A stretch of DNA of 64,000 bases from Geosiphon pyriformis uo1 (lineage: Eukaryota; Fungi; Glomeromycota): positions 496,001 through 560,000 of the forward strand of contig JAAOMT010000718.1 of assembly GCA_016748015.1 (NCBI GenBank). Reading direction: 5' to 3'. The first letter of the stretch is position 1. Each line of letters starts with the position of its first letter. This document shows positions 8,849 through 48,900 of this stretch, in pieces. Made by a program: the position numbers and the translations under genes. The notes beneath the pieces were generated by a model. The model made no database searches and was not told where the DNA came from. It was given only the letters and a program-made list of their open reading frames with translations.

Positions 8849-10594
8849 CTACATACCTAAAACAACATGCGGATTACTATCCAAGCCAGAAAAGAAAGAA
8901 CAAAGCCTGCAATGGCCAAAACTCACAGCAAAAAACTCTACAATACCAAGCAACCTGACCACTCCATCTGAAAGCATAAAAGACTTACAATATGAAAGAC
9001 CCACCACCAAACCATCATTACCAACTAGGCCTGTCTTCTCCATATCTACTCTAAATTTAGACCTTGTCAACCACACCTTGGATCAATGCAACTCAACCAA
9101 ATACCTTACAAAGTCAATCATCACACTAGTAGCACACTTAACATCACCAAAAATGCTAACCATCTCTGCACACCAATTCTTAAGCACAAACTCTTTACAT
9201 ATAACTGAATACAAGCTGACATCTGAATAACAAAGATCAAAAGTCCTCAAGACAAAGGAAGAAGATGGGTTACAAGCACCAGCCAAAGAAATCCAGCGAG
9301 CAAATGCCTCTGACAAAATGTCCTCCCGAATATAAACATTCTGTGAATAGGTGAAAACATGGTCTGGCAATTCCACTTTGCCACACAACAAACACTGCAT
9401 ACTAAGATAACTTTTATCATATAACCTTTTGTGAACAGCCACCAGCAGCTTTCTGTATAGAGCCTTCATCAAGTATGTGCGAAGAGTCACAGACTTACAG
9501 CTGGTAAACCCAGCAAGCATATGCAAATCAGAATGCCAAACCTGTGCAGAAGCAATCCAATCAAAACTCTGCAATAAAGCAACTGGAACCACATTATGAC
9601 CTGGACCAGCTTCTCAATAAGCACAACAAATAGATCTATAAACATCTCTGATAAAGTGACAAATATTACCCAAAATTGCAGTACTCTTAGCCACCAAAAA
9701 ACACTTATGAACCCCAGCCGGCAAAGAAAAAAGAGAGCCAGCAGTCTCATCAGCCAGCGTATTGGTTCTATCATTACTAGGGATCCCAAAATGACTCTTG
9801 ACCTTAACCCAACTCACAGCAAGATCTTTATCCTTAATCAAATTGGCAATATATTTTTTCTCAATGTAACAATGATTGCAAAAATCAGGAACAGCAAAAG
9901 CTAATTCGGACACACACACATCAATGGCAGCTTGGTTGTTGAGATGCAAAACCACTGCACAGGAGGGAGGAACACATTCCAGAGCAAGAGCCACAGCCTG
10001 CAATTCTGATAAAGTTAAAGATAAAAGCCCATGAACACCAACACCAACTCCTGAATTCAAAGCAGAAAAATAAGCAGCAGTCCCGCTAATTACACTGGAG
10101 GAGCCAGAAAATTTCAACAAACTATCAGTATAAACATCAAAAGAGCCAGACCAAACTTTGAACAGACCATTACACACAAAAGCAAACTGTTCAGAATCCA
10201 AAATGCTACAGCCTGAAAAACCACCAGCTTTAATAGCAGCAAGTGGCACTGAATTCTTATTCAGCAAAAACCTCAATGTGACATTGAACCAGTGAGACAC
10301 AGGGCCCCTAGGATCAAGCCTTTTCTAACAACAAAAAGTCTTCTAATCCATTACAGCACCTTTTTTGTCAAGGAGTCTGTTATCAAAAGCAACTCCAAAA
10401 TGCTTCAAAGAACAAACACAACTAAGAAACAAGGATTTCCCCAAAATTTCAGACATAAGAAAATTACCAGGGTTCCTAAATGCACTAGGTAGAAAGCCCA
10501 CCAAAGACAGCTCACAATCCAAAAAAATTCTGACTACACTAGCTAAAAAATTGTTTACAGAACTAATGAGCAGCTTAACTGGGAACTGCAACAG
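8849..10594 (-). pseudogene. LINE-B ORF2 3' part (RNase H, CCHC finger)
   Basis: DVYTDSL..SELQAVALA..WVKVKSH..NDRTN (RNase H); CLLCGKVELPDHVF. Confidence 0.9.
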
Positions 10595-11458
10595 TATTAC
10601 AGGTGATTATTTTTGCTGTTGATTAAATAACAAACCCATAACTTGGTGCTTAAAAGCTACTTCCATGGATGAAGTTCTGCAAGTGTTGTATCTGAAGGTT
10701 TTGATAGAGTTTTTTGTATAATAGACAGAGATTCAATAGTGTTGATAGTAGATGTATCTTTCCAAGAGTTTTTCCAATTTCTTTCTTAGTGTGGTGGCTG
10801 AATTTAGTCTGGCAGTCATGCCTTTCTGGTAAGCTATCTGATAATATATAAAATCCTACCCTTATTTCTGGGTCTTTTACTAGGCTATTCTTGATGTCAA
10901 TAACTCAGTGCTTAATCTTTTAATCAATTAGTATACAACAACAAAATCAAAAAAAAGAAAGAAAAGAAATAAAAATAAAAAAAATAGAGAAAATAAGCCA
11001 AGACAATTTGGTATGTTAGTATCTCATTAATAGCCGTGATCAAGAGCTATTGTTCCAGCGTGGTTAAGTATCAATTACTATCAACACTTCATGTTGATAG
11101 TAGAAAGTGGGTTGAGATATGGAATAATTATTTATTTGATAATTGGGAACTAGAATGTTGCTTAGATTAAATTTAAACTAAGAGGTCTGTCTTTTCAGCT
11201 TCTAATCCTACTGCTATATATACATAATTGAGATTCCTCAATTTCTCAATTTTTTGCAACAGGAATCTTGCAATTCTTGATAAAAGGAATTCTGGAATTC
11301 TAAAATCCTGCAATTCCTCATTGGGGAATTCTGAAATTCCTGGAATCCTGCAATTTCTCTGGGAAAAATTCTGGAATTCCACATTTACTACATATTCCTC
11401 TGATTGGCTAATATCTACTGACTAATAATACTATATTTCCTATATTCTATGAGTAACA
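10595..11458 (-). repeat. 3' LTR of L copy a
   Basis: TGTTACTC...CTGTAA(T)A termini; preceded by PPT AAAAGGAAGGAATAA; matches 33779-34668. Confidence 0.95.
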
Positions 11459-11471
11459 TTATTCCTTCCTT

Positions 11472-12132
11472 TTAATATTGAGCTCTATCGAAATCCAATT
11501 CATTTAATTCTTCCTCTTAAAGTATTTTCTGAATTTCATTTTCAAGAATTACTTGTGTTATTTGAGTCCATAATTCTTCAAATTGAGCATTGGTGATTTT
11601 TCCCAATTGATTACTGGTAACTGTATCCATTGCTTTGTTGAGTAGAATTTCTGGTCAATCCTAAAATGCTGTGTGTATTCAGTATATAGCTTGAGCTTGT
11701 GTGGATAAATTGTTTTTTCCCACAAAATGTTCTAGTTGTTGTAGTATTGTTGTGTTGAATACCCACTTTGTTTTATCCATATATAAGTTCTGGATATTTA
11801 CGTGTTGTCCCAAGTAAAAATAACAATAGTTTTTTGGAAATTGTTGTATCCATCAAGTCCAAGTTTCTCTGGTAAGTTCTTGGTGTAATCTGACTATTTG
11901 TTGTTCTTTCATGGCCAATTTTATCTTAGTCATGATCTTGTCGACCATGTTTTCAAGTCTTTTCTATGCTTTGTTTTGTGGTATTTTTGCTGTTTTTTTG
12001 TAACAAATAGTTTGTTAATTGATGGTAATTTTCATCTCTTGGTGTTAGATTAATTGAAAAATTTGTTGGGCTAGTGAATGGATATTGTCCATAATCTCCA
12101 TTTTTCTGCTCTCTTCTGTCATGTCAATTATG
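11472..12132 (-). pseudogene. Extra 3' ORF (ORF3) of L copy a, unknown function
   Basis: Manual translation MEIMDNIHSLAQQ..WIQQFPKNYCYFYLGQH..ILQQLEHF..NQLGKITNAQFEEL..ELDFDRAQY*, homologous in copies b and d. Confidence 0.75.
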
Positions 12133-12154
12133 TTCTTATATATTCTTTTGTCGA

Positions 12155-13537
12155 TCAATTGGATGTGTTGTTGTCAATGATAATGATTGGTTTCAGATTT
12201 CATGAAATCTCATCTGGTTGGACTAGTATTCTCTGTACTCCTAATTGTAGAATATTACTAGTGGATAATGATGCTATATGGTGGTATGGTTTCAGTCAAT
12301 CTCCATGTGCTGCTTTGGTCAAAATTTTGTTATTCAATCTTAATTTGTAAGCTTCATTTCCTAGAATTTCTTCTATGTGAAATGGTTTGTCCTATTTGGG
12401 ATCAAATTTTCCACTCTATTGTTTTTCCACTTTGGTATGATGTAGTAGTACTTTGTCTCCAATCCTGAATTCAACTGGTTTATCTGGTAGTTGGTTATCA
12501 TGTCTTTCTTTTTGTTTCTCTTGTGACTTTTGTATGTTATCAGCTGCTCTTTGTTGTTTGTTTTTTAATGTTTCCATTAAGTCATATGTTCTTTTCAACA
12601 ATGTATTTTTGAAATTTTCTTCTGTTATTGGTTCAGTTGAATATGTGCTGACTTCTATTTCCACTGGTAGTATTGCTGTTCTATCATATATTAATTCAAA
12701 TGGTGTTGCTTGTGTAGTATCTTGCTTTATTGTCTGATAAGCAAATAGTACTAATGGTATCAACAAATCCCAATCATTTTGGTTTTCTTGGCTGAATTTA
12801 GCTATTGCTTTACACAATGTTCTGTTGAATTTTTTGACTAATCTATTGGTTTGTAGATGGTATGGTGATGATAGTAGTCTCTTAATTCCGAATCTTTGAT
12901 TCAATTCTGTTAATGTTTTGTTTACAAAATGAGTTCCTTGGTCTAATAATAATTCTTTTGGACATCCATGTCGACAGATCAAATTCTGATGAACGAATTC
13001 AGCAATGAATTCTGCATCCGTTCTTTGAATTGCTTTTCCCTCTGGCCATTTAGTGAGATAGTCCATGGCTACTGCTATGTACCTGTTTCTTCTGCTGGTG
13101 ATTGTTAATGGTCCAACTAGATTAATTCCAACATGGTTGAATGGTTGTCTTACTTTGATTGGTCTTAACGGTTCACTGGGTTTTGTACCTCCTTTTCACT
13201 GACAAGCATCACAATTTTGAACATATTGGATAATGTCTGGATACATTGATGGCCAATAGTATCTTTTTCTGGTTCTTTTCATGGTTGCTTTTTTATAAAA
13301 ATGTTCTGCTGTTGGATTTGAGTGCATGTTGAATAATATTGTCTCTTTTTCTGGCTCTGTAATTACTCTGGTTGGTTGATCTGGATCTTTTTTATTTTTC
13401 CAATAAAGTATATTTTGGTGAGTGATAAAATATTTTGATTGTTGTTTGATACTTCTTCATTCCATATGAGATAAATTCTCCTTGAACTGTTAAGTGTTTA
13501 GATAATGTTGCAATTGTTGATATTTTTGTATGTTCAT
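12155..13537 (-). pseudogene. Integrase ORF of L copy a (HHCC, DDE, GPF)
   Basis: MDYLTKWPE, LDQGTHF, PYHLQTN..FNRTL, TPFELIY; own ATG at 13537. Confidence 0.93.
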
Positions 13538-13629
13538 CTTTTGTTGTATTTTTCCATTGGTATTGTTCTAGTTTTATTATATTTTTGGGTTGAAATGTTC
13601 TTAGATTTGTTTTATTCGCGATAAACCGT

Positions 13630-14612
13630 TGTTACCGAAAGTTTTTGGTCTCTTTTCTGTAATGTTGTTGATACTTATTTGCTGTGAATTCACGTTTTCA
13701 GGAAGTAGTTGAATCTCCAATAACTGAATTTATCTTCAAATTATCTCCTATAATTTGAACTTGCTGGGTTTATGAGTGGAATGGCCAATTTCATGCCAGT
13801 TGCTTTATGTAGTTACGTTGTAGTAAACGTCAACTCTTTCCTAGAAATTGCTCGTCTGGAAGCTCACTAAAAAATGTGTAGTTACTTTGCTGTGAAAGTC
13901 AACTCTTCTACAGGAATCTTGTCTGTAGGCTACCCTAATGATTGTAATAAGAAAAGAAAAAAAAAATAAAAGAAGTGTAAAAGAAATAGGATTTTATCAA
14001 GAGAAACGTTTTCTATCCAGGCCTAGAGTCACTAACAGTTCACTGAAATCGGTAGCTAATCAATTTTAAAATGTTAGTTGGGTTTTGAGAATTTTCCAAG
14101 TGCAATAATTTAAAGAATTTGGTTTTTCGAATTATTTGATATTTATTTCTTTTTGTGTGTATAAAAACGGTTTTAAGAGATAAATCTAAAGTAAGATACA
14201 TTTTCTCGAAGAGAGAAGCTCTTCTTTTATACAACTTGTCGTAACACTATTCTATGAACTTGAATTTTACTATTTTCTACAATTTCGCTGAACTAAAGAT
14301 ACATTTCAGCGAACTACAAGTTATTTCTGCAAACTATTAGATATTTCGGTAAACTATCAATTATTTCGGCGAATTTCTATAAATTTCGGCGAACTTTTGA
14401 ATGTTACATAATTTGGAGTATTGCATGATTGATCATCGCAATTAGGTTACATTTGTGTTGTGTACAATTTGGGTTATTAATTAAATGATAATTTCAGACA
14501 TTCTTTGCTAATGTAATAAGTGATAATTTGAAATGATAATATATGCTAATTAATGATAGGAATTATGAGATAGTTTCATGCTAAATAATATCTCTAATTT
14601 CGTCTGGTAACA
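13630..14612 (-). mobile_element. Element M copy 1 (solo-LTR-like or non-autonomous, 983 bp)
   Basis: TGTTACC...GGTAACA termini; TSD CCGT/CTGT; interrupts the RNase H NADGL motif of copy a. Confidence 0.92.
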
Positions 14613-17600
14613 CTGTCAGCATTTCCATTGTCTTTTCCCTTTTTGTAATGTATAGTATAATTGTATAGTGCGAGTGCCATTTTTCATTTTGACTGTCTTC
14701 TATTTCCAAATTCTTGTTTTTGGAGTGATGTTAATCCCTTGTGATCTGTGTATACTTCAAACTTCTGGCTCAAGTATTCTTTTCATTTCATGACTGCCCA
14801 GTATATTGCTAAGTGTTCTTGTTCCAGTGTTCCATAGTTTTTTTCGGCTGGTGTTAAACCTCTGCTGGCATATGCTACTAGATGTTCTCTGCTGTCTGAT
14901 CCTCTCTGAAATAATACTGCTCCCAATGCTTGGCCAGATGCATTGGTGATGATGATGAATGATTTGCTGTAATCTGAATAAATCAGTACTGAAGCTTAAA
15001 TGAGCTTTCTTTTCAAAATGTCAAAAGCTTCTTGTTGACTTTCTGCCCATTCATATTTGGTATTCTTGGTTTGCAGTTGATTGAGTGGCTGTGCTATCTT
15101 GGAAAAGTTCTTGATAAAACGTCAATAGTAGCTGGCAAATCCCAAGAATGATTTCAGTTCTGTCATATTGGTCAGCACTAGAAAGTTCTTTACTATCTTT
15201 ATTTTCTCTGGATTTGTTTTGATGCTGTCTTTGCTGACTATATGTCCCAAAAATTTTAGTTCTGTCTTGCCAAAGAAGCACTTTGTTGCATTTAACTTTA
15301 GCCCTGCTCTTTTTAGTCTTTCAAACACTTGTTAAAGATGATGAAGATGATCATCAAATGTTTTTGAGAATATGTTGGTGTCATCCAAGTATACAACTAC
15401 TGATTTCTACAATAAGCCAGTATAGACAATTTCCATTAGCCATTGGAAAGTGGCTGGTGTGTTGGTTAAACCAAATGGCATTACTTCAAATTCAAAATTT
15501 CCTTCTCTTGTGGTGAATGCTGTCTTCTCTTTGTTGGCTGGATCCATGGCTACTTGCCAGTAACCACTATCTAAGTCTAACGTTGAGAACCATTTGTTTC
15601 TGCCAAAAGCATCAAATAATTCCTGTATCCATGGAATTGGATAGCTGTCTCCACGAGTTACACCATTGAGTTTTCTGTAGTCTACACAAAATTGGATCTT
15701 TCCATTCTTCTTATGGACAAGTACCACTGGTAATGACTATGGGCTTATTAATGGCTGAATTAGCTCATTGTCAAGCATTTGGTTTATTTCTTGACGAATA
15801 ATTTCATGGTTGACTAGTGGCACTCTGTATGCTCTTTGTTTAATTGGCATTGTATCTCCAGTTTTGATCTAATGCTGGATGATGTCAGTTCGGCCAAACT
15901 CATTTTTGCTGGCAAAGATTTTATTGAACTGGTTGAGTAACATCTTGAGTTGCATACATTGGAGTGGATCTAAGTTTCTCATGTTCATTTGTTCCAATTG
16001 TTCTGGTTGGAGCAAATAACATTCACTTTGTCTGTATATTGTTTGTGATGTGATATCAACATATCCACAAAGTTGTGGAAAGTCTGGAATGGGATTTGGT
16101 GGTTGATCTTCTATTTCAGTGTTTAAGTATCCAATAATAGTTCTGGCTGGTATTTCTATGATATTTCCTGTATTGTTGTAGATGGAAATTTTGATGTGGC
16201 TGTAATCTTTGGCTGGTATGTGGAGATTGATGAGTCCAACTTCTCCTGATTTACAAAGACTGGCTTCTGCTTCAAAAATTTGTGCTTGGTCTTTTTCCTT
16301 TCTTTCTATTGCTAGCATATACTGGTTATATGGTGAAATAGAAATAGCTTAACTGGTTGAGATAATTTCTTCTTGGCCAACAATTTCTTCCTCCACCATA
16401 TTAATTGGTATATCTATTCTACCTGTTAATCCAAATCCCTGTATTCCTCTCACTGTTATTTCTAATTCCTCCTTCTTTCCCACTGATATTAACTGGACTA
16501 CTCTAACCAGAGACAGGAATATTGTTTGTGCTATCTTTTTGTTGGGCTCTATTATATAGGCCTTTTCTGAATCATTTTGTAGCATAGCGATGATATTTCC
16601 TACATATCCTGTGTCAATTATTCCTCCTCTTATATTAATCTCTCTTTTCGCTAAACTACTCCTAGATGCTAATTGAACCATTGTTGTTGCTGGGATTTCT
16701 AGTGCTACTTTCAGATTAATGCAGGTGCATGAATGTGGTTCCAATTTGATGGCCTCTTTTCCTGGATATCTCAGATCAAACCCTGCATCAATATCATGTG
16801 CACATTCTGGCATAATACCTTTTCCATTGTCACTATACCATTTCAATTCTTGTTCTTTGGAGAGATCTAATAGTGCAATGTATTGTTTATAGTTTAAATC
16901 GGAGTTTGAATCTGAGTTTAAATTGTCTTTGTTGTCATTACCATTTTGAATAGAGCTGGAACTGGTGTTTTTGTCATCGTCATCGGAGTCTGGATCATGA
17001 TTGATCAGTGATTCTGATTCCGATGCACAGCTGCTGATTGGTTCTTCTTTTTCAGGAATCGTGTAGATCATGTATGGTGGTAGATTGTAAATGAGATCAC
17101 AATTGTCACAATATTCAAAGTCACTGAGAATTAAACAATGGCAACACAGTCTTGTATTTAACTGTGCTAGCCATTGTTTTTGCTTTTCTCTAGTGGGTGC
17201 CAAGTTTTGGTAGTGTTCATAGAACTCTTCTGGTTCCAGAAAATTTATGACTGGCTTTGCATCCCAGTCAAGCTTGATGGGTTCTGGTGGGTTGTTTTTA
17301 ATTGTCCTAATTTCTTCTGGCAATATGTTTTCAATTTTGGTGATTGCCATCCACCATAATTCATTGTTATTGTGTAGACAACTGTCCAATTGCTGTACAG
17401 CTCTTCTCCAGGCAGTTTCTATGGGTGTTCTTTTCTCAACCCAGTCATTGATAAGGATCGTGTATTGGCAGAACACGTCACACATTTCTCTTCTCCCTGA
17501 AATGTCGTTTCACATTCCTTCATCGAGGAAAGTTTTTCCATAGGCTATACATGGTGTATTATCCCATTTTCCCACTCATTTTGGTCTTCCAAAATGTTTG

Positions 17601-18519
17601 ACATGGCATGTATGGCAATAAAACTTGGTTGCCGTCTGATATTCTTCATCATCACCACAGCATGCACCCATTGACAACAATTTCTTGCCACAATCAATGC
17701 ATATCAGTTTGGGTTAGTGATAGGTTGATGATTGTTGTTGACTATAGATGTATGGAATATAAGTGTTGTTGACTTGAGTGTTTTCTTCCTCTCTCTCTTT
17801 CTCTTTTCCTTTTTCTTCTTTCCACTCCCAACTCGATGGTTCTTCTTGTTCATTGTCAGTTCAGATCAAATCGTCTGTTTCCCAAGTCAGTTCCTCTTTT
17901 TGCTTTCTCTTAGGGTTGTCGTTTCACGAGAGTATTGGTGGTAGTTTGTTGTGGTCAGTGTTGGCCCAAGAGACTTGGTAAGCTTCCCAGATAGGTTTCT
18001 CTTTCTCCTCCTCCAGTTCGATCAATAATTTCTTTCTTAAAGAAGTCTTGAAATGGCCACACGTGGCCAGTACACATATATGTTGGCCCTAATATGTTAG
18101 CTGGAGTTCCTGAGTGTTCCAGTCTAACGTCGTGTTGACTTTGGATAGCCAGTCATTATCAATAAGAGCTTGGTATTGAGTGGCTTCCATCACTAGAACT
18201 TTAATGGAAGTCACAATGCCATTGACTTTGAAAGAGAAGTCGTTGATTTCACCGATTGGAGTTTTGGTCACTCCATTGGCTGTGATGATTCTGGCACTGG
18301 CAGCTTGATCAACTCAGTGACCTAATTGATCCATGAGTTGTCATGTAATGATGCTGCCTGCTGAACTGCTGTTAAGGATTAATTTGATGGATTGTTCCTC
18401 AACTTTGGCATTAGTGTACATTGCAGTGATTGGTTTGGCTTCAAGAGTGGCTTCACTAAATAATGGCATTGCAGTTGTTTTCTCGAATTCGAATGGGAAT
18501 ATAGCAGCCAAAGACTTGT

Positions 18520-19390
18520 TGTTACTCATAGAATATAAGAAATATAGTATTATTAGTCAGTAAGATATTAGCCAATCAGAGGTAGACATAGTAAATGTGG
18601 AATTCCAGAATTCCTTTTAGAGGAATTGCAGGATTCCAGGAATTTCAGGATTCTCTGGTGAGGAATTGCAGGATTCTAGAATTCCAGGATTCTTCTCATC
18701 AGGAATCTCAGGATTCCTGTCACAAAGAATTGAGGAATTGAGGAATCTCAATTATGTATATATAGCAGTAGAATTAGAAGCTAAAAAGACAGACCTCTCC
18801 GTTTAGATTTAATCTAAGCAACATTCCAGTCCCCAAATCATCAAATAAATAATTATTTCATATCTCAATCCACTCTCTACTATCAACACTTCATGTTGAT
18901 AGTAATTAATACTTAACTATGCTGGAACAATAGCTCTTGATCATGGCTATTGACGAGATACTAACAAATTGCCTTGGCTTATTTTCTCTATTTTTTTTAT
19001 TTTATTTTTTTTATTTTATTTTCTTTCTTTCTGTAATTTTGTGGTTGTATACTAATTGATTAAAAAGATTAAGCACTGAGTTATTGACGTCAAGGATAGC
19101 CTGGTAAAAGACCCAGAAATAAGGGTAGGATTTTATATATTATCGGATAGCTTATCAAAAGAGCATGACTGCCAGACTAAATCCGGCCACTATGCTGAGA
19201 AAGAAATTGGGAAAACTCATGGAAAGATACATTTACTATTGACCCTATTGAATCTCTGTTTATTATACAAAGAACTCCATCAAAACCTTCAGATACAATA
19301 CTTGCAGAACCTCATCCACGGAAGTAGCTTTTGAGCACCAAGTTACAGGTTTGTTATTTAATTTAACAGCAGAAATATTCACCTGTAATA
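18520..19390 (+). mobile_element. Solo LTR of family L (copy c)
   Basis: Full LTR homology with no internal sequence; TSD TTGT/TTGT; the empty site in copy b reads TCGT (25780-25783, minus). Confidence 0.93.
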
Positions 19391-19993
19391 TTGTCTTTGG
19401 TAAGAGTAGCAGGTAGAATATTACTGGTGAGTAGTTGTTTTTGGGCGAATGCTGGGTTATTGGTTGAGGCATCTTCTGGGGTAATCAAAAGACTTAAATA
19501 GTTCTGGGAATTCGAGTTCTGGGGTTGACCAGTACCCGAATTTCACTGACATAATCCAAATGGTTGCTGTAAAAAACTGGGGATCAGTTGATGTACTACC
19601 ATTACCGATCTCCAGTTCTGTTAAGTCATTCTCAGTCTTTGAGTTCCATTGGGTGGTAAGCTTTGAGGTGGTGTTTGGATTTGTTGGGGCTAATAGATTA
19701 TTTGTGGCTGTGGTTGTTGATAAATTACTTATGGCTGTGGTTGATAGATTGGAGCTTGATACACCAGAGATTGATAGACTGATGACTGCATCACTAGTAG
19801 GTAAGCAGATTGGTTTTGATTTGGATATTGATTCAAAGTTTGGAACTGGCGATTGGGGTTTCAATATTGATTTCCTGATCGTTAGTTATTTAAATGCTGG
19901 CAACAGTCAATTTGGATATGTTCTTGTTTACCACAATAGTGGCAGATATGCATTTTCTGTTGCCACTATTGATTGGTCGATGAAGATGGACAT

Positions 19994-20961
19994 TATTACT
20001 AGACAAAATTAGAGATATTGTTTAGCATAAAATTACCCTTATAAATTTTATCATTAATTAGTATATATTATCACTTATTATATTAGCAAAATGTCCAAAA
20101 TTAGTATTTAATTAATAATCCAATTGGTACATAACACAAATATAATCTAAGTACAATGATCAATCATGCAATACCCTGAAATATGTAATACTCAAAAGTT
20201 TGTTGAAATTTGTAGAAATTTGCTAAAATAATTGATAATTCACCAAAATATCTAATAGTTTGCAGAAATAACTTGTAGTTTGCCAAAATGTATCTTTAGT
20301 TCAGCGAAATTGTAGAAAAGAGCAAAGTTCAAGTTTATAGAATAGTGTTATAACAAGTTGTATAAAAGAAGAGCTTCTCTCTTCGAGAAAATGTATCTTA
20401 CTTCAGATTTAACAATTAGAATCATTCTTTACACACAAAAATGAAATAAATATCAAATAATTTGAAAAATCAAATCCTTAATTATTTCCCTTTTAAAATT
20501 AATCAATTTCTACTAAACAGTTTTGAAATTGATTAGCTACCGATTTCAATAAACTGTTAGTGACTCCAGACCTGGATAGAAAAACGTTTCTCTTGATAAA
20601 ATTCTATTTCTTTTATATTTCTTTTATTTTTCTTCTCTTTTCTTATTACAATCATTAGGGTAGCCTACAGACAAGATTTTTGTAGAAGAGTTGACTTTTA
20701 CAGCAAAGTAACTACACATTTTTAGTGAGCTTTCAGACGAGCAATTCCTGGAAAAGAGTTGACGTTTACTACAATGTAACTACATAAAGTAACTGGCAAG
20801 GAATTGGCCATTCCACTTATAAGCCCAGCAGTTCAAATTATAGAAGATAATTTGAAGATAAATTCAGTTATTGGAGGTTCAACTACTTCTAGAAAACGTG
20901 AATTTGCAACCAACAGACATTTACAACATTCAAGAAAAGAGACCAAAAACTTCCGGTAACA
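19994..20961 (+). mobile_element. Element M copy 2
   Basis: Reverse complement of M1; TSD ACAT/ACGT; TATAAAA at ~20361. Confidence 0.92.
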
Positions 20962-22571
20962 ACGTGGTTGATTTTGGGCACTATTAGAGTTTCCTTGATT
21001 ATTGTATCATTGTGGAGGCTGATAAATAGTGTGATTGTTAGTTAAGTATTCTTCCAGTCTCTTATTAATTGATTCACTGAACTTCTCCAATTTGGAATCC
21101 AATTCAGATGATCCGTTTATTACTAGATTAATGGCTTGGATGTGATTAGCCTCTGACTCAGCAGATTCAAAATCTCTGGTGTGTGTGACTGCATCTTGAA
21201 GGGTGCCTGGATGCAATGGACATACATGTTGCAAAATGCTGCTGCACAGGCCACGGATAAACTGGTTGAGTATCTGTGGGGCTGTGAAATAGTTGGCATC
21301 AATTGCTTAAATTTGGCACAGGTTTCAATGGAAGCATCCCAGGTAAGTGGTGACTGCTTCAGTTTTCCTTGTTTTATGGTGGTGAATGTATTGACTAGGT
21401 GATTGATGCTGTTATTGTTGCTGAAATATCTTAGAAATTCCACTTTGAAGGCATTGAAATCTTGTGGTTTATTAACCAAGCTCTAATACCATGAATTGGT
21501 GGTATCTTTGAGAAAGTAGGGAATGGCTTGCATTGCTTGGGCATCATTCTATTTGTTGGCTGCGATGGTCTTTTCTATATCATTCAGCCATATTTGAGCA
21601 TCATCCTCTTCACCAGTAAAGTTGTCAAGTTTTGCGATTGGTACATAGGCCATTGAATCTAAGTTAGGTGGTTGTGGTGGCTATTGAAGCAGTTGTTGTT
21701 GTACTGGTTGTTGGGGTGATAGTTGAAGTGACTGTTGTATGGGTTTGGCTATGGGATTAATTGGCAGTTGATTAATGATGATTACCAGAGGTAAGTTTTG
21801 CTGATTAATTAATTTGGGGTTTGGATTGTTTTGTCTTTGATGATTCGAAGTTTTGATTTCTGAATTTTTTAGATTTAGATTTTGCTGAGTTTGAAAATTC
21901 GGGATTTCAACTTTTCCTTTTTTTCTGATTCTGTTGCTTCTCACAGATCAGAGATTCCGAAATCTGGTAAAGGTAGTGGTGATCAAAGTCCTGATGGGGT
22001 TGATGATCATGAATTAAATTCCTCAAAGTATTTGCTGTTACCAGAGGTTTTTGGCCTCTTCTTAGCTATTGTATATTTGTTGTAATACTGTTAATTCACG
22101 ATTATGGGAAGTGTTTGAACCTCTGATAACTGAATTTATCTTCAAATTATTTCCTATAATTTGAACTGCTGGGCTTGTAAGTGGAATGGCCAATTCTGTG
22201 CCAGTTATTTTGTAGAATTACGTTGTAGTAAACGTCAACTCTTTCCCAGAAATTGCTTGTCTGAAAGCTCACTAAAAATGTATAGTTACTTTGCTGTGAA
22301 AGTCAACTTTTCTACAAAAATTCTCGTTTGTAGGCTACCTAAATGATTTATAATAAGAAAAAAAAGAGAATAAAAGAAATATAAAAAAAAAAAATAAAAC
22401 TGATGATTTATGAAAGTTGTTTCAGATCTAGGCCTGAAAGTGCTTTAACAGTTTACTGAAATTGGTAGCTAGTCAATTTCAAACTGTTAGTAGGAATTGG
22501 TTAATTTCAAGGAAAATAATTTAAGAATTTGGCTTTTTGAATTATTTGATATTTATTTGTCTTTTGGGTGT

Positions 22572-23448
22572 TGTTACTCATAGAAATATAGGAAATATAT
22601 TAGCATAATTATTAGCCAATTAAAAGTAAGCATAGTAAATGTGGAATTCCAGGATTCCTCTCAGGAATTGCAGGATTCCAAGAATTTTAGGATTTCCAAT
22701 GAGGAATTACAGGATTCCAGAATTCCAGGATTCCTCTCAAAGGAATCGCAGAATTTCAGGAATTCCAGGATTCCTGTCATGAAAAATCAAGAAATTGAGG
22801 AATCCCAATTATGTATATATAGCAGTAGTGTTAAAAACAGAAAAGACAGAATCGATACCACAGAATCCTTAGCCAAGAAACCAATCATCAAATAAATAAT
22901 TATTCCATATCTCAATCCACTATTCACTATCAACACTTCATGTTGATAGTAATTGCTACTTAACCACACTGAAACAATAGCTCTTGATCACGGCTATTGA
23001 TGAGATACTAACGGACCAAATTGCCTTGACTTATTTTCTTTATTTTCTTTATTTTATTTCCTTTCTTTCTTTGATTTTGTTGTTGTATACTAATTGATTA
23101 AAAGATTAAGTGCTGAGTTATTGACGTCAAGGATAGCCTGGTAAAAGACCCAGAAATAAGGGTAGGATTTTATATATATTATCAGATAGCTTACCAGAAG
23201 GGCACGACTGCCAGACTAAATCCGGCCACTATGCTGAGAAAGAAATTGGGAAAACCACTTGAGGATACAACCATTATCAACCTTATTAAATCTCTGTTCA
23301 TTATACAAAGAACTCCACAACAAAACCTTCAGATCAACCAAAACCTTCAGATACCATACTTTCTGCACATCATCCACGAAAGTAGCTTTTGAGCACCAAG
23401 TTATGGGTTTGTTATTCAATTCAACAACAGAAATAATCACCTGTAACA
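22572..23448 (+). repeat. 5' LTR of L copy b
   Basis: TGTTAC..GTAACA; CCAAT, GGA(A)TTCC array, TATATA box ~22814, AATAAA, hairpin ~22926-22950. Confidence 0.97.
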
Positions 23449-23450
23449 TT

Positions 23451-23467
23451 TGGTGCTCTCTGTAAGG
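23451..23467 (+). promoter_or_regulatory. Primer-binding site TGGTGCTC(C)CTGT(G)AGG
   Basis: 2 nt after the LTR, begins TGG; same site in copy a. Complements a tRNA ending CCTCACAGGGAGCACCA, which resembles elongator Met or Ile-UAU (identity inferred). Confidence 0.85.
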
Positions 23468-23510
23468 TATAATCCTACAGAAAATCAGCACTGACAACAC
23501 CAAACCAAAA

Positions 23511-26500
23511 GTGGCAGAATCAGAAATTATAGAAGCAAACCATTTAGGATTCGCAAAATCCTTATTTTAACACTATTGTCAATACTTGGGATTAAACCAC
23601 AATCATATATCTGCCGAATTAGTCTTCAATTTCTACGTCAACAAAAAGATTTCCTCTTTATTAGGAACACCAATGAATATTGAATCAGCAAGAGAAACTT
23701 TCTATAAGGAATTAATTCAAAACACCAACCTACCAACAAACCATAATTTTGCATCCATCATCACTGAGATCAACAAAAAAATTGAACACCACACTTAACA
23801 AAGATATCCAATTACATATGCTAGTAAAAACAAGGGAAAATTACAAACACCAGCAATAACACCCAGAAAAATACAGCCACTTGCTTGGAAGAAAAACAGA
23901 GTTGAATCCCCAAGCAACTCATCCTACCACTATACATCTGAAAGCATCATCAACATATCATCAACAGATGCATTCCCATCAATTGCGACATCAGCATTTG
24001 GACGATTCTCATTTCAAAGTAGACAAAGGAAAACAGAATTGTTAAGACCATACAGCAAATACTTTGAGTGATTTAATTCGCAATTATCAATCCCATCAGG
24101 ACTTCGATCATCACTGTCTCCACCAGATTTCGGAATCTCCGATCTGTGGGAAGCAGCGGAATCAGAAAAGGAGGAAGAAGAATCAGAAGATCAAGAATTT
24201 ACTTACCAGCACCCGATCACTGAAAACCCGGAAGTTGAAACTCTGAACCTTTAAACTCAGCAACAGTTAGAAAATCCGGAAATCAAAACTCCAAATATTC
24301 GAATGCCGCCAAATCAAAGAAATCAAAAACCCGAATTAATTAATCAGCAAAACTTACCTCCAGTAATCGTTATCAATCAACTGCCGATTAATCCCATAGC
24401 CGAATCCATACAGTAACTACTTTAGCTACCACCCCAACAGCCAAGACAACAACAACTGCTTCAACAGCCACCACAACCACCTAACTTAAATCCAATGGCC
24501 TATGCACCAATTGCAAAACTTGACAACTTTACGGGCAAAGAAGATGACACTCAAATATGGCTGAATGATGTAGAAAAGGCCATCGCAGCCAACGGATGGA
24601 ATAACACTCAAGCAATGCAAGCCATTCCTTACTTTCTCAAAGATACCGCCAATTCATGGTACCAGAGCTTGATTAATAAACCACAAGATTTTAATGCCTT
24701 CAAAGCGGAATTCCTAAAATACTTCAGCAACAATAACAGCATCAATCGTCTAGTCAATGTATTCACCACCATGAAACAAGGAGAAACTGAAGCAGTCACC
24801 ACTTACCTGGGACGCTTCCATCGAAACCTATGCCAAATTCAAGCAATTAACGCCAACTATTTTACAGCCCTGCAGATATTCAACCAGTTTATCCATGGCC
24901 TGTGCAGCAGCATCTTGCAACATGTACATCTGTTGCATTTAGGCACCCTTCAAGATACAGTCACATACACCAGAAATTTTGAATCCGCTGAGTCAGAGGC
25001 TAACCATGCCCAAGCTGTTAATCTAGTAATAAATGGATCATCTGAATTAGATTCCAAATTGGAGAAGTTCAGTGAATTAATCAATAAGAGATTGGAAGGA
25101 TACTTAGCTGACAATCATGCCATTTATCAGCCTCCACAACGACACAATAATCAAGGAAACTCTAATTGTGCCCAAAATTAACCACATCCATCTCCATCAA
25201 CCAATCGACAGTGGCAACAGGAAATGCGTATCTGCCACTATTGTGGTAAACAAGGACATATCCAAATTGACTGTTACCAGTATTTAAATAACCAATGATC
25301 GGAAAATCAATATCAAAACCCTGATCACCAGTTCCAAACTCTGAATCAGTACTCAAATCAAAATCCACCCGCTTACCTACCAGTGACACAGTCATTAGTC
25401 TATCAGTTTCCAGTATATCAACCTCCGATTTATCAGCCACAGCCACAAGTAATATATCAACCACAGCCACAAATAATCTATCAATACCAACAGATCCAAA
25501 CACTGTCCCAAAGCTTACCACCCAACAGAACTCAAAGACCAAAAATGACTCAACAGAGCTGGAGATCAGCGATAGTAGTCTATCAACCGATCCCCAGTTT
25601 TTCACAGTAACCATCTGGATTATGCCAGCGGAATTCGGGTACTGGTCAACCCCAGAACCCAAATTCCTAGAACTATTTAAGTCTCCTGGTCACTCCAGAA
25701 GATGCTTCAACCAATAGCCCGGCATTTACCCAAAAACAACCCCTCACCAGTAATATCCCACCCGCTACCATTACTAAAAACGAGTCATTAGCTGCTATCT
25801 TCCCATTCAAATTTGAGGAAACAGCTGCAATACCATTATTTAGTGGAGCTGCTCTTGAAGCCAAACCAATTACCGTGATGTACATTGACACCAAAGTAGA
25901 AAAACAATCCATCAAATTAATCCTGGACAGTGGTTCCGCAAGCAGCATAATCACAAGACAACTCATGAATCAATTAGGTCGCTGAGTTGATCGAGCTGCC
26001 AGCACCAGAATTATCACGGCCAATGGAGCGACCAAAACTCTAATTGGCAAAATCGATGACTTTTTTTTTGAAGTCAATGACATCGTGACTCCCATTAAAG
26101 TTCTAGTAATGGAAGCCACTCAATACCAAGCTCTCGTTAGTAATGACTGGCTATTCAAAGTCAATGCAACGTTAAACTGGAACACCCAGGAACTCCAGCT
26201 AATGTATCAGGGCCAACACATATGTGTCCTAGCCATGTATGGCCACTTCAAAACTCCTCCAAGAGAGAAACTATTGATTGAACTGGAGGAGAAGAAAGGA
26301 AAGCCTACCTGGGAAGCCTACCAAGTGTTGTGGGTGGACAAAGAACACAACAAACTACCGCCAATACTCTTTTGGGATGACAGCAACAAGGGAAAAGGGA
26401 AACAAAAGGAAGAACTTACCTGGAAAACTGATGACCTGACATGGACCAACAACAATAAAAACAAATCGACTTCAAGCTGGGAATGGGAGGAGGACAAAGA

Positions 26501-29713: not shown

Positions 29714-29776
29714 GAACATTTCAACCCAAAAATATAATAAAACCAGAACAATACCAATGGAAAAATACAACAAAAG

Positions 29777-31159: not shown

Positions 31160-31183
31160 ACCATCAAAAGAATATATAAAGAC

Positions 31184-31843: not shown

Positions 31844-31856
31844 AAAGAAGAAATAA
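31842..31856 (+). promoter_or_regulatory. Polypurine tract
   Basis: AAAAAGAAGAAATAA directly before the 3' LTR (AAAAGGAAGGAATAA in copy a). Confidence 0.85.
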
Positions 31857-33778: not shown

Positions 33779-34668
33779 TGTTACAGGTGATTATTTCTGC
33801 TGTTGATTAAATAACAAACCCATAACTTGGTGCTCAAAAACTATTTCCATGGATGAGGTTCTGCAAGTGTTGTATCTGAAGATTTTGATGGAATCCTTTG
33901 TATAATGGACAGAGATTCAATAGTGTTGATAGTAGATGTATCTTTTTAAGAGTTTTCCTAATTTTTTTCTCAGTGTGGTGGCCAGATTTAGTCTGGCAGT
34001 CATGCTTTTCTGGTAAGCTATCCGATAATATATAAAATCCTACCCTTATTTCTGGGTTTTTTACCAGGCTATCCTTGATGTCAATAACTTAGTGCTTAAT
34101 TTTTAATCAATTAGTATACAACAACAAAATCAAAAAAAAGAAAGAAAAGAAAATAAAAAAAATAAAAATAAAGAAAATAGAAAAAATAAGCCAAGGCAAT
34201 TTGGTACGTTAGTATCTCATCAATAGCCGTGATCAAGAGCTATTGTTCCAGCATGATTAAGTATCAATTACTATCAACATAAAGTGTTGATAGTAGAGAG
34301 TGGGTTGAGATATGGAATAATTATTTATTTGATGATTGGAAACTGGAATGTTGCTTAGATTAAATTTAAACTAAGAGGTCTGTTTTTTCAGCTTCTAATC
34401 CTACTGCTATATATACATAATTGAGATTCCTCAATTCCTCAATTCTTTGTGACAAAAATCCTGGGATTCCTGGAATCCTGCAATTCCTGATGAGAGGAAT
34501 CCTGGAATTTTGGAATCCTGCAATTCCTCGTTGGGGAATCCTAAAATTCCTGAAATCCTGCAATTCCTCTGAGAGGAATTCTGGAATTTCACATTTACTA
34601 CATATCCCTCTGATTGGCTAATATCTACTAACTAATAATACTATATTTCCTATATTCTATTAGTAACA
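33779..34668 (-). repeat. 5' LTR of L copy a
   Basis: TGTTAC..GTAACA; followed on the minus strand by the PBS and gag. Confidence 0.95.
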
Positions 34669-39476: not shown

Positions 39477-39671
39477 GAAGAAGGAGTTATTAAGAAGAGA
39501 AATTGTGAAATACTAACAAGAAAAATAAAAAACTTCTTTATCAGAAAAGTGCTTTTTGAAGATTTGTGGATGTAAGAGAGAAAGAAATTTTTTATGGTTT
39601 TAATAATTTCAAAAAAAATTTTATTGTTTTTAAAATAAAACAAATAAGTTGTATAAAAAATATAATAAACT

Positions 39672-42994: not shown

Positions 42995-45900
42995 TGTTAC
43001 AGATGATTATTTGGAATGTTGATATAAATAACAAACCCGTAACTTGGTGTTTAATAGCTTGTATAATTGGTAATATTTGAAAATTTTGGTTAAAATCTTT
43101 TGTATAATAAACAAAGATTCAATAGTTGTTTTAATAGCTTCTTAGAATAAGTATTCTGTCAATTTTTTTTCTTCAGCATAATGACCAGTTTATTTTAACA
43201 GTTGTGTTCTTCTGGTAAGCTATCCTTAAATTTTTAAATTCTATACTTTTATTTTTGGATTTTTTACCAGGCTATTTTTGACATTAATTAATCAGTGCTT
43301 AATTCCTTAAATCAGTTAGTAAACAACAAACAACAAAAGAATTAAAAAAATAAAAAAAATAAAAAAAAAATTAGTATCTCATCAATAGTCATAATTAAGA
43401 GCTATTGTTTCAGTATGATTAAGTATTAGATGTTATTAACATAGAGTATTAATAACAGATAAGTAATAGATATTCTTAATCAAATAATAATAACATGAAT
43501 TGGATGATAATAAGTATGTTTTATTGAATATTTTAATGAATTTACTTCAATTAATAGTAACTATTTATAAAGTAAAGGTTAATTAATAGATAAGAAAGAG
43601 AATATTAAATTGAATCTAAACCAAATACTTTTTTTGCTTTTAATGTTACTGCTATATATATATAGTTAGTGTTATATAAGATTCCTGGAATTCTGGGATT
43701 TTTTTAAAGGAATTCTACAATTCTAAGTAAAGAATTCTGGTATTTTGGAATTCTGAAATCTTGTAATTTTTTCAGAGAAATCCTGAAATTTTTCTGTTAT
43801 TACACCTACTTTTAATTGGTTATTTCTCTAACTATAATACTTCTAATTTCTATGAGTAATAATATTTTTTTTTTAATATTAAGCTCCATCAAAATTTTTT
43901 AAACTTTCTAGATTTTTTTTTTGAATTAGTTTTATAACTTTCTTCTTCAGAATTGCTTTTGTAATTTTTCTCTACAATTCTTTAAATTGAGCATTGGTTA
44001 ATTTTTTTAATTGATTAATGGTTATAGTATTTATTATTAGATGTAGTAATATTTCTGGTCTGTTTTAAAATCTCATCCATAATTAGTAAATGACTCTTAT
44101 ATATGTGGATAAATTGTTTTTTATGACAAGTTGTTCAATTTACTATAGTTAAATTGAATCAAATTTTTTTTTGTTTTGTTGGTGTATAAGTTTTTAATGC
44201 TTAACTGTTATTCTAATTGATAATAATAAAAGTTTTTTGGATTTTGTTGTATTTATTGGTTCTAATTTTCTAAGATCAATTCTTTTTTTGGTATAAATAT
44301 TCTTAAATCTTTCAATGTCTTTTCTATTTTTCTCATTATTTTATCTACAATATTTTCAGAAGTGTAATATCTAAAATATTGTTCCTTGGTTTGGTTTTTT
44401 CATGGTATTTCTTTGTCTTTGTATTGTATTATGTGTTTATTGATAGTGATTTCCAGACTTAATTGTTGTTGTTGAATCAGTTGTAATAGTTGTTGTGTAA
44501 ATGAGTGAATGTTATTGGTAATTTCTATCTTTTCTTGTTGTTTTTGTTATACATATTGGTTTTTTATATACTGTTTTAATAGATTAATTCAACATATTTG
44601 TTTTAATAATAATAATTGGTTCTCGATCTTATGGAATTTTATCTGGTTTGATTAGTATTTTTTGTACTCTCAGTTGTAAAATATTATTGATAGATAATAA
44701 TGCTATATTGTGATATAATTTTAGTTAATTTCCATGTGCTGCTTTTACTAAAATTTTGTTGTTCTATCTTAGTTTATAAGCTCTATTTCCTAGAATTTCT
44801 TCAATGTAAAATGGTCTATTCTATTTGGGATCAAATTTTCCACTTCATTGTTTTTCTGCTTTGGTACAATATAAGAGTATTTTGTTTCCAATCTTAAATT
44901 CAACTGGTTTATTTGGTAATTGATTATTATGTCATTTTTTTTGTTTTTTTTGTAACTTTTAAATATTATTAGCTGTTCTTCATTTTTTGTTTTTTAATGT
45001 TTTCATTAAGTTATATGTTTTTTTAGCAATATTCTTTGAAAGTTGGCTTCTGTTATTGGTTTTGTTGGATATGTGTTGATATTTATTTCTATTGGTAGTA
45101 TTGTTGTTTTACCATAAACAAATTTAAATGATGTTGTTTATGTGGTATTTTGCTTTATTATCTAATAAGCAAATAATACTAATGATATGAATAGATTCCA
45201 TTTGTTCTGGTTTTTTTGGCTGATTTTTGTTATTGCTTTACACAATGTTCTATTAAACTTTTTTATTAAGCCATTTGTTTGTGAATAATATAATGATAAT
45301 AATGATTTTTTTATTCCAAATTTTTAACTTAATTCTGTTAATGTTTTGTTCACAAAATAAGTCTCTTGATTTGATAATAATTCTTTTGGATATTTATGTT
45401 AACAAATCAAATCTTGGTAGACAAATTCAGCTATAAATTCTGTATCTGCTCTTTGGATTGCTTTTGCTTCTGGCCATTTTGTAAAATAGTCTATAACTAC
45501 TGTTATATACTGATTGCCTTTGCTGATTATTGTTAATGGTCTAATATTACCAGTAAAATTTTAGCTATTAATTAGCATAAAATTACTTTCATAATTTCTA
45601 TTATTAATAAGTATATATTATTATCATTTCAATTATTACTTATTATTTAATCAAATTATCAAATATTATCATTCAATTAATAATCCAATTTGTACTATAG
45701 AAATTAAGATGATCAAATTACACAATACTCTAAACCATTTAATATAGTTAAAATTTCCTGAAATTAACAAAAAATTTGCCAAAATAATTAAAAATTTGTA
45801 GAAATAACTTGTAGTTTGCCAAAATATATCTTTAATTTGTCAAAATTGTAGCAAAGAGAAAAGTGCAAGTTTAAAAACTAGTACTACAACAAGTTGTATA

Positions 45901-48900
45901 AAAAAAAAGCTTCTTTCTTCAAAGAAAATGTATCTTATCATAGTATTTTACTTTAAATATCTTAATTAGAACAAATTATCTTTTACACATTTTAAATAAA
46001 AATTAAATATTCGAAAACCCAATTCTTTAAATTATTATACTTGAAATTTCCTTAACACAACTAATATTTTGAAATTAATTAGCTAACAATTTCAGTAAAT
46101 CTGTTAGTAATTCCAGGCCTGAATAGAAAACGTTTTTCTTGATACAATTCTATTTCTTTTATATTTCTTTTATTTTTTATTTTTATTTTTATTATAATTA
46201 TTGGAATAGTCTACAGACAAGATTCTTGTAAAAAAGTTAACATTCACAGCAAAATAACTACACATTTTTAGTGAGCTTCCAGACAAACAATTCCTGGAAA
46301 AGAGTTGATATTTACTACAATATAACTACACAAAGCAACTGGCATAGAATTGGTCATTCTACTTATAAGCCCAATAATTCAAATTATAGGAAATAATTTA
46401 AAAATAAATTCAGTTATTGGAGGTTCAACTACTTTTTTTAGTCGTGAATTCACAGCAAACAGATATTAATAACATTCAAGAAAAGAGACCAAAAACCTCC
46501 AGTAATACTAACTAAGTTAATTCTAATTCGATTAAATAATTGTTTTATTTTAATTGGTTTTAGTGGTTTATTGAGTCTTGTTTCTATTTTTCTTTAACAA
46601 ACATCACAATTTTGAACATATTAGATGATATCTAAGTATATAAATGGTCAATAATATCTTTTTCTGGTTTTTTTCATGGTTACTTTTTTATAAAAATGTC
46701 CTGTTATTAGATCTAAATATATGTTAAATAGTATTGTTTTTTTCTCTGGTTTTGTAATTACTCTGAATGGTTGATTTGGGTATTTCTGTTTTTCTGGTAT
46801 AATATATCTTGGTAAGTAATAAAATATTTTGATTGTTGTTTTATGTTGTTTTGTTCTTTTTGAGATAATTTTTCCTTGAACTGTTGAATATTAATATAAT
46901 ATTGGAGTTATTAATATTTTTGTGTGTTTATTTTTTGTTATATTTTTGGGTTGAAATGTTCTTAGATTTGTTTCATTCATGACAAACTATTGGCATTTCC
47001 ATTTTTTTTTCTTTTTTTATAATATATTATACAATTAAATAGTGATAGTTCTATTTTTTATTTTACATAGTAGTTGTCTCCAAATTTTTGCTTTTAGATT
47101 AATATTAATTCTTTGTGATTAGTGTACACATTAAACTTTTGGCTTAAATATTTTTTTCATTTCATAACAGTCTAATAGATAGCCAAATATTCTAATGCTG
47201 AAGTTTCATAGTTCTTTTTAGCTGGGCTTAAGCTTTAATTAACATATGCTATTAAATATTCTTTTTTATTTGGTTTTTTTTGTAACAATATTGCTCCTAA
47301 AGCTTAATCAGATGTATTAGTGGTAACAATAAATAATTTATTGTAATCTGAATAGATCAGTACTGGTGCTTGAATAAGCTTTCTTTTTAAGATGTTAAAA
47401 GCTTCTTGTTGAATTTTAATCTATTTATATTTTACATTTTTTGCTTAGAACTAGTAAAGTAGTTAAGTCAGTTTGGAGAAGTTTTGTATAAAGTGGTAAT
47501 AGTATTCAGTGAATTTCAAGAATGCTCTTAATTCTATAAGATTTGTTGATACTGAAAAGTTCTTAACAATCTCAATCTTATCTGAATTCATTTTGATCCC
47601 ATCTTTGCTTACAACATATCCCAAAAATTTCAGTTCTGTTTTGTCAAAAAAATACTTTGTAGTATTTAACTTTAGTCTGGCTTTTCTTAATCTTTTAAAT
47701 ACTTGTTGCAAATAGTGAAAATAGTTATTGAATGTTTTAAAAAACACATTGGAGTCATTTAAATAAACTACTATTGACTTTTATAGTAATCCTGTATAAA
47801 CAATTTCCATAAGCCATTGGAAGATAATTGGAGTATTTATTAAACCAAAGTACATAACATTAAATTCGAAATTTTTTTTTCTGATTGTAAATGCTGTTTT
47901 TTTTTGTCAGCTGAGTTCATAACTACTTGTCAATAACCACTGTCTAGATTCAATGTTGAAAACCATTTTTTTCTTCCAAATGCATTGAATAATTCTTGAA
48001 TCTGTAAAATTGGATAGTTGTTTCCATGAGTAATACTGTTGAGCTTTTTGTAATTTATACAAAAGTGAATTTTCCCATTTTTTTTTTAGACTAGTACTAT
48101 TGGTAATAATTATAGACTCATTGATAGTTGAATTAACTTATTGTCCAACATCTGGTTGATTTTTTGTCAGATAATCTTATGGCTTGCTGGTAGTATTTTA
48201 TATGCTTATTGTTTTATTGACATTGCATTTCTTGTCTTGATTTGGTGTTAGATGATATCAGTTTTGTTAAATTCATTTTTATTGGCAAATATGTCAATGA
48301 AATTGTTGAGTAGTATTTTGAGTTATATATGTTAAAGTAGATCTAAGTTTCCCAAGTTTATTTGTTTCAATTGTTCTAATTAAAGCAAATAACATTCTTT
48401 TCATTCATATATTGTTTATAATATGATATCCACATATCTGCACAATTGTGAAAAATCTGGAATGGTATTTGGTAGTTGGTCCTCAACTTTAGTGTTCAAG
48501 TATTTGATGGTGGTTTTGCTTGATATTTTGATAGTGTCTCTAGTTGTATTATAAATAAGAATTTTGATGTATTTATAGCTTTTGGCTGGTATGTAGAGAT
48601 TGGTGATTTCAATCTTTCTTGATTTATAAATAGTTAGTTTTGCTTTAAAATTTTGGGGCTGGTTCCTTATTTTTTTCTCTATTATTAACATATGTTGGTT
48701 ATATAGTGGAATAATAACTAATTAATAAGTAGAGATAATTTCTCCCTTATTAATTGTTTTTTCCTCTGCCATATTAACTAGTATGTTTATTCTACCTGTT
48801 AATTTGAATCCATTTTTTTCTCTGGCTGTGATTCTTAATTCTTTCTTTATTTTTATTGACACTAATTGAGTTATTTTTACCAGAAATAGAAATATTGCCT

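Follow-up and report, generated by a model that had tools for sequence, protein, structure and literature searches.

Central pyrimidine-purine steps and an excess of CpG at the decayed target sites of two Ty3/gypsy families in Geosiphon pyriformis

We analysed the insertion targets of two related Ty3/gypsy families of long terminal repeat (LTR) retrotransposons, named L and M, in a 64,000 nt stretch of Geosiphon pyriformis DNA (referred to as the window) and in further Geosiphon loci. The target-site duplications (TSDs) of these elements are 4 bp long, and their positions 2-3 hold a pyrimidine-purine (YR) step, that is CG, TG, CA or TA, in 31 of the 33 insertion events sampled (17 paired and 16 one-sided) against a background of 23% (p = 5e-18), an enrichment which the initial annotation of the window had led us to expect. 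CG is found in excess among these steps, and the two copies of each duplication have since decayed. These features probably reflect an integrase with a 4-bp stagger that obeys a central YR rule and has a strong CpG bias, the latter hidden by the later decay. The initial annotation had gone further in proposing that all insertions land on CpG, and this fails as four paired events have non-CG centres and TT stands at the centre of a one-sided event, while the strong preference for CpG at TSD positions 2-3 holds against both a random-position and a YR-only null.

Target sites in the window

The layout of the window was determined by self-comparison and by reading of the junctions, and the targets were polarised by comparing each site with uninserted paralogous copies from the window and the fetched loci, amounting to up to ~20 copies. 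Since the empty paralogous sites hold the 4-mer only once (at least 10 events), the duplication is 4 bp in length. Every 4-mer quoted as a flank in the initial annotation was recovered at its position, but the eight cases that it had put forward as CpG targets were not alike: M1, M2, M3 and copy a were firmly of CG origin and a solo L LTR and M4 likely so, whereas copy b was refuted and a one-sided CTAT flank was uninformative.

Copy a of L (10595..34668, minus strand, 24 kb, with its 3' LTR at 10595-11458 and its 5' LTR at 33779-34668) has gained length from M1, a solo L LTR, M2 and M3, the four elements that entered it directly, and from copy b, which sits within M3. M1, a solo LTR from M, the sister family of L (13630..14612, minus strand), is flanked by CCGT (13626-29) and CTGT (14613-16), and its target was CCGT, the paralogs being CCGT, CTGT, CCAT and CTAT. 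The solo M LTR M2 (19994..20961, plus strand) lies between ACAT (19990-93) and ACGT (20962-65) and entered ACGT, for which the paralogs read ACGT, ACAT and ATGT. The solo M LTR M3 (22036..33168, minus strand), which copy b divides into two parts (22036-22571 and 32716-33168), has the flanks TTGC (22032-35) and TCAC (33169-72) and the target TCGC, with TCGC, TTGC and TCAC in the paralogs. The flanks of copy a itself are ACAG (10591-94) and ATGG (34669-72). The paralog of its host element was tried as polariser and had diverged too far, but as T>C and A>G changes are rare, the CA and TG centres point to a CG origin and the target ACGG.

The solo L LTR within copy a (18520..19390, plus strand) is flanked on both sides by TTGT (18516-19 and 19391-94) at a site that was an ancestral CpG (paralogs TCGT, TCAT and TTGT). 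Similarly, M4, a solo M LTR (45545..46507, plus strand) inside an old L copy, lies between two copies of CTAA (45541-44 and 46508-11) where ~20 L copies read CCGA, CTGA, CCAA or TCGA, and this site too was an ancestral CpG. As both TSD copies are identical in these two cases, they are ambiguous as to the bases present when the element arrived. Copy b, which is better preserved than any other L element in the window (22572..32711, plus strand, LTRs at 22572-23448 and 31857-32711), is flanked by GTGT (22568-71 and 32712-15), which had been taken for a decayed GCGT. This is contradicted by all five cleanly aligning M paralogs, which read GTGT, with CG or CA in none of them, and the centre was therefore TG and not CG. 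The old and heavily decayed L copy (42995 to ~49575, minus strand, 3' LTR at 42995-43861, GC content 23%, CpG observed/expected ratio (o/e) 0.09) could be read on one side only, and its CTAT flank (42991-94) is uninformative as two paralogs read CCAC. ATTA flanks of M LTRs, considered as non-YR targets, were discarded as they represent the polypurine tract of M at inner junctions.

Replication in independent loci

We examined 11 further Geosiphon loci of ~21 kb each (L001-L011) around dUTPase open reading frames (ORFs) of the L family, which were picked by protein similarity only. In nine of the 11 the L element is complete, with its two LTRs, and all 18 of the flanks have a YR centre. Quoting the flanks 5'/3' in element orientation, a CG target was recovered at L001 (CCAC/CTGC, target CCGC), L006 (GCGC/GTGC, target GCGC), L007 (ACGA/ACGG, target ACGG), L008 (CTGA/CCGG, target CCGG) and L010 (GCAT/GTGT, target GCG(T/C)). 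CG is still present in 3 of the 9 elements and discordant CA/TG centres in 2. The targets at L002 (CTAC/CCAC, target CCAC), L004 (ATAC/ATAC, target ATAC) and L005 (ATGG/ATGG, target ATGG) were never CpG and form, together with the GTGT of copy b, the provably non-CG paired events. The paralogs leave the target at L003 (ACAT/ACAT) ambiguous, and an outer element at L008 provides a further pair (CTAG/CTAA).

Among the 16 one-sided outer flanks, 14 have a YR centre, and three represent CpG sites (ACGT, CCGA and an ATGG whose paralogs read ACGG). Empty sites demonstrate that the CpG existed prior to the insertion for M1, M2, M3, L001, L006, L007, L008, L010 and three one-sided events.

Strength of the YR rule and of the CpG bias

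YR steps make up 23% of the dinucleotides throughout the window, whichever part is considered. Present-day CpG accounts for 1.1% overall, with 0.1-1.3% in L, LINE-like (long interspersed nuclear element) and other repeats, 2.0% in the solo LTR M1 and a higher 2.9% within the gene island, and TA is 8x commoner than CG in the window, yet seldom used as a target. When 11 L-internal regions were aligned, for counts only, 312 of the 8380 positions (3.7%) proved to be ancestral CpGs. These correspond to 16% of the YR positions, and a given copy retains only 26% of them as CG.

Against this expectation, nine of the 17 paired events were firmly CG at insertion and three lie on an ancestral CpG, while four are provably non-CG (TG, TG, CA and TA). 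An intact CG is retained in a TSD copy in five events. Ancestral CpGs were hit by 10 of the 12 L-internal insertions when one-sided events are included (p = 3e-13 for random positions and 5e-7 for YR-only) and by 8/8 of the paired ones (p = 4e-7 against YR-only). The replication set alone, where a firm CG origin applies to 5/9, departs from both nulls (p = 0.007 for YR-only and 8e-6 for random positions). A mixture likelihood was fitted to the 17 TSD pairs with CpG survival taken from each element's own LTR pair (0.11-0.54). It gave a maximum-likelihood fraction of 0.65 with CG origin (support interval 0.36-0.89) and rejected the value of 0.16 (twice the log-likelihood difference, 2dLL = 13.6). 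The flanks of the non-CG events have 11-30% GC and almost no remaining CpG, which fits the use of CG when available and of another YR step otherwise.

The symmetrised site table also displays the VYRB signature (V, any base but T; B, any base but A), with T at TSD position 1 in 4/34 and A at position 4 in 5/34. Outside the duplication, T was seen at -3 in 19/34 symmetrised sites (A at the mirror position) and A at -5 in 20/34, in what is a small sample.

Several points weigh against a CpG-biased integrase. The sample is small (33 events, 17 of them paired) and the interval on the CG fraction is wide, the loci are rich in transposable elements (TEs) by construction, all the elements are old, and the insertions seen are survivors of selection only, with no de novo ones among them. 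A clear non-YR exception is TTTG at L011:7188-7191, with a TT centre, where an M 5' LTR abuts L-internal sequence; the paralogs read TTTG or TCTG and the other end of the element lies beyond the locus. Also, a one-sided ATTA flank requires a later mutation, the site being ATGG in 13 paralogs. Lastly, the readout of CG by the integrase itself is putative, and methylation, nucleosomes or a cofactor could contribute.

Decay of the duplicated sites

The differences between the paired LTRs of 11 L elements (the window and L001-L010) comprise 677 transitions and only 19 transversions. At the family level, C>T (with G>A) affects ~10% of the cytosines at CpA, CpC and CpT, and at CpG it reaches at least 27% by majority consensus and 74% by a CpG-aware count, whereas the reverse changes are rarer (T>C 2.9%, A>G 2.0%). 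The decay thus goes beyond CpG, with C>T operating generally and CpG showing a roughly ten-fold excess over the other contexts. The suggestion that deamination hides the TSDs is therefore upheld as regards C>T/G>A decay, but this decay is not restricted to CpG. For the repeat-wide cytosine-to-thymine drive atop CpG decay, a process similar to repeat-induced point mutation (RIP) or non-CG methylation are candidates.

Integrase and proposed mechanism

The integrase of copy b (29741..31156, plus strand) is interrupted by stops and comprises a zinc-binding H2C2 domain, an rve catalytic core and an SH3-like domain. An intact homologue (L005:13112-14386) can be aligned with Ty3 integrase (7q5b, E = 5e-31) and with prototype foamy virus (PFV) integrase (3l2q, E = 3e-24). 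At the position of PFV Ala188 and HIV-1 Ser119, a residue that influences the choice of target bases (PMC4422553), this homologue carries Thr within the motif SDQGTHF, which from the alignment is a candidate determinant of base choice and nothing more. A conserved extension of ~230 aa follows in frame after the SH3-like domain (31157-31850 in the window, L006:14534-15088 and L005:14531-14992). Nothing credible was obtained for it in Pfam at E <= 10, a profile search against the PDB was empty, and an AlphaFold2 model from a 6-row alignment is all-helical at low confidence (mean predicted local distance difference test score, pLDDT, 43). A chromodomain was not matched in copy b or in the intact C-terminal ORFs of L005 and L006 (Pfam, E <= 10), and the description of the system as chromodomain-free agrees with these negative Pfam and PDB searches, in which the copies searched were decayed.

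In retroviruses with a 4-bp stagger the intasome kinks the target centrally and selects YR there, T being disfavoured at position 0 and A at +3 (PMC4422553). As the VYRB pattern of L and M is the same, the basic mechanism is most likely shared with these intasomes. The DDE integrase of L and M cuts the target with a 4-bp stagger and, by this analogy, would need an easily unstacked YR step at its centre, position 1 being unfavourable to T and position 4 to A. An extra bias at the base level would favour CpG, accounting for ~2/3 of the surviving insertions though CG occupies ~4% of the positions and ~16% of the YR steps, and the other YR steps (TG, CA, TA) would be taken where CpGs are scarce. 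The duplicated CpG copies then decay independently by C>T/G>A to yield CG/TG, CA/TG, TG/TG or TA/TA pairs, which no longer resemble either a duplication or a CpG. Because CG occupies exactly positions 2-3 in at least 12 events, a register beyond what regional tethering provides, the bias is most simply explained by direct contact of a symmetric intasome with the guanines or cytosines of the palindromic CpG.

Methylation dependence and other explanations

The initial annotation had suggested that the integrase possibly recognises 5-methyl-CpG, which would guide insertions towards young, methylated TEs, keep them out of unmethylated genic CpGs and amount to a heterochromatin-targeting system that lacks a chromodomain. 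We consider this model unlikely in its full form. Every CG target was seen in TE sequence with CpG decay (flank CpG o/e 0.04-0.45), the gene island with a CpG o/e of 0.90 carries no insertion, no chromodomain was found in the C-terminal region of the integrase, TEs carry heavy CG methylation in the related Rhizophagus irregularis (bioRxiv 10.1101/2021.03.30.436303), and CopiaMBD sets a precedent for retrotransposons that read methylation (PMC6673714). The TE hosts are, however, explained by the TE-rich sampling, and the absence from genes by purifying selection alone, so the empty gene island was rejected as evidence for methylation dependence, being confounded by selection against genic insertions. 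Moreover, at least 4/17 insertions occurred at non-CG steps, which means that methyl-C is not obligatory. The related proposal that the L/M intasome itself reads symmetric 5-methyl-CpG at the centre of the stagger, such that TE-silencing methylation serves as the next landing signal, appears rather doubtful to us. If true, it would amount to a self-limiting nesting into young methylated TEs which needs no reader domain and whose targets vanish as methyl-CpGs deaminate.

It is improbable that flexibility alone is at work, with any bendable YR step sufficing and the CG excess arising from small numbers or from over-reading of decayed TG/CA pairs. The near-universal YR centres, the four paired events that are provably TG, CA or TA, and a VYRB pattern equal to the retroviral one (PMC4422553) are what such an account would give. 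But CG formed at most 16% of the ancestral YR steps and nevertheless underlies nine firm and three likely cases among the 17 paired events, and YR-only targeting is rejected both by the paired L-internal insertions, all eight on ancestral CpGs, and by the mixture likelihood. The intact CG left in five events and the sparing use of the far commoner TA argue in the same direction.

Tethering, in which a host reader of methyl-CpG or heterochromatin bound by the 230-aa extension brings the intasome to CpG-rich methylated chromatin, is very improbable. The conserved extension of unassigned fold does exist, but no domain was detected in it and its model is of low confidence, and tethering would lead to regional enrichment and not to a nucleotide-exact CG at positions 2-3 in at least 12 events. 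An artefact of mis-set boundaries or of CpGs arisen after insertion is next to impossible: the pattern was first picked post hoc from eight cases, but the boundaries were set by ~40 aligned termini and by empty sites, the CpGs were already present in uninserted paralogs, the pattern recurs in loci picked blind to their flanks, and the p-values for the sample as a whole are 1e-7 to 1e-18.

The L and M families

The domain order of L, determined on copy b with Pfam, is gag, protease, a Cys-rich region, dUTPase, reverse transcriptase (RT), RNase H and integrase. Membership of Ty3/gypsy is indicated by direct TG...CA LTRs, a primer-binding site that follows the 5' LTR, a polypurine tract preceding the 3' LTR and an integrase located after RT, and the best PDB match is the Ty3 Gag-Pol protein, 7q5b. 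The LTR tips TGTTAC...GTAACA and the primer-binding site TTTGGTGCTC... are common to L and M, and the polypurine tract reads ...GGAGGGAATAA in L, as against ...GGAGATTA in M. M as a non-autonomous or unrelated element was ruled out, as its LTRs adjoin the same primer-binding site as those of L and enclose dUTPase-bearing internal regions; since M LTRs elsewhere bound their own polypurine tract and such internal regions, M1-M4 are solo LTRs of an autonomous sister family. No env was detected in L or M.

The dUTPase (PF00692, E ~1e-17 to 1e-19) is situated between protease and RT, at 27471-28277 in copy b and within 16349-17485 in copy a, and is also carried by the sister family M. Between protease and dUTPase lies a 296-aa Cys-rich stretch (26580-27467), for which a Pfam search returned no match and which has been kept as an open frame in several copies.

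For the longest L-family ORF of the window (16349-17485, minus strand), 626 homologues were obtained at E <= 1e-10, and among the 120 homologues listed, all 119 that are named are hypothetical proteins of Geosiphon pyriformis (GCA_016748015.1). In a search for young or intact copies, none of the 150 best-scoring representatives exceeded 1064 aa. The LTR pairs share 91-95% identity throughout (92.1% in copy a and 95.4% in copy b), and with no young copies at hand, target inference has to take decay into account. A much better preserved related element, from a metagenome of another sample (L012; ENA ERZ25039530 contig_55115, 4269-15565), has LTRs that are 97% identical, ORFs of up to 1064 aa, an intact integrase ORF (L012:11739-13130), LTR tips, primer-binding site and polypurine tract identical to those of M, and the flanks ACGG/ATGC, which suggests that the lineage is still alive beyond the Geosiphon strain that was sequenced.

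Other features of the window

The host of copy a is a LINE-like element with an endonuclease ORF (Exo_endo_phos), present in two diverged copies of ~67-70% identity at 1-10590 and 34673 to ~39400. Copy a sits in the second of them, and the L element of L010 sits in a homologous LINE copy. The gene island at 52-62 kb, free of L and M insertions, holds pieces of a BCAS3/WD40-like host gene (52678..55484, minus strand), whose ORF pieces were searched separately and unjoined and gave only two database matches, at 43-46% identity, to short Logan and JGI assembly contigs. The GC content falls to 11-17% at 49576-52000 and 62001-64000, and diverged internal repeats occur at 49894-51017.

Comparison with known systems

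The 4-bp-stagger intasomes of PFV, Moloney murine leukaemia virus (MoMLV), porcine endogenous retrovirus (PERV) and xenotropic murine leukaemia virus-related virus (XMRV) resemble L and M in the DDE integrase, the 4-bp TSD, the central YR step and the disfavoured T and A at positions 1 and 4 (PMC4422553). In those retroviruses, however, the central YR step is only ~63% above a 22% background (~36%; PMC4422553), compared with ~94% in L and M. That study pools the YR steps and reports no CG bias, whereas in L and M CG is used ~6- to 20-fold more per site than other YR steps, by a count-based estimate.

Among LTR elements, strict sequence specificity has been called exclusive to insect errantiviruses (PMC5408687). 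The errantiviruses of Drosophila and their derivatives (gypsy TATA, ZAM/Tirant CGCG, Idefix ATAT), likewise of the Ty3/gypsy group, use a specific palindromic 4-bp target (PMC5408687), but their targets are full alternating tetranucleotides, and the centre of CGCG is GC, a purine-pyrimidine (RY) step, whereas L and M specify the central dinucleotide only. Errantiviruses have AGT...AnT termini and often an env, in contrast to the TG...CA termini and the lack of a detectable env in L and M, and thus integration of the errantivirus type does not apply to elements with these termini in which only target positions 2-3 are constrained.

Plant LTR retrotransposons in 12 genomes have 4-bp TSDs with GC-rich central dinucleotides and AT-rich flanking bases; this survey offers a logo pooled across families without polarisation for decay, leaves a CpG centre unstated and describes the preference as 'weak' (PMC6911290). 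The arthropod CopiaMBD resembles the methylation reading proposed for L and M in that CpG methylation is proposed to guide its landing (PMC6673714), but it would do so through a captured methyl-CpG binding domain and with a regional bias, while in L and M no reader domain was found and the CpG lies at the centre of cleavage. Chromoviruses (MAGGY, Tf1-related) have, like L, a Ty3/gypsy integrase that bears an SH3/GPY-F module and is extended at its C-terminus, and insertion into repeat-rich chromatin has been proposed in both, but chromoviruses carry an integrase chromodomain, and none is detectable in the L extension.

Significance

Local target choice of the retroviral type is usually a weak palindromic bias, whereas this fungal Ty3/gypsy lineage combines a near-absolute YR rule with a many-fold CpG bias. 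For annotation, this implies that TSD-based detection of LTR elements fails on L and M unless C>T/G>A decay is allowed. Paralogous empty sites are an effective route to the original target. As the CpGs of TEs are lost by deamination, the CpG bias ties the supply of integration sites to the age of the TEs and possibly to methylation. It thereby offers a simple candidate mechanism for the self-nesting and the TE-rich compartments in genomes of the arbuscular-mycorrhizal type.

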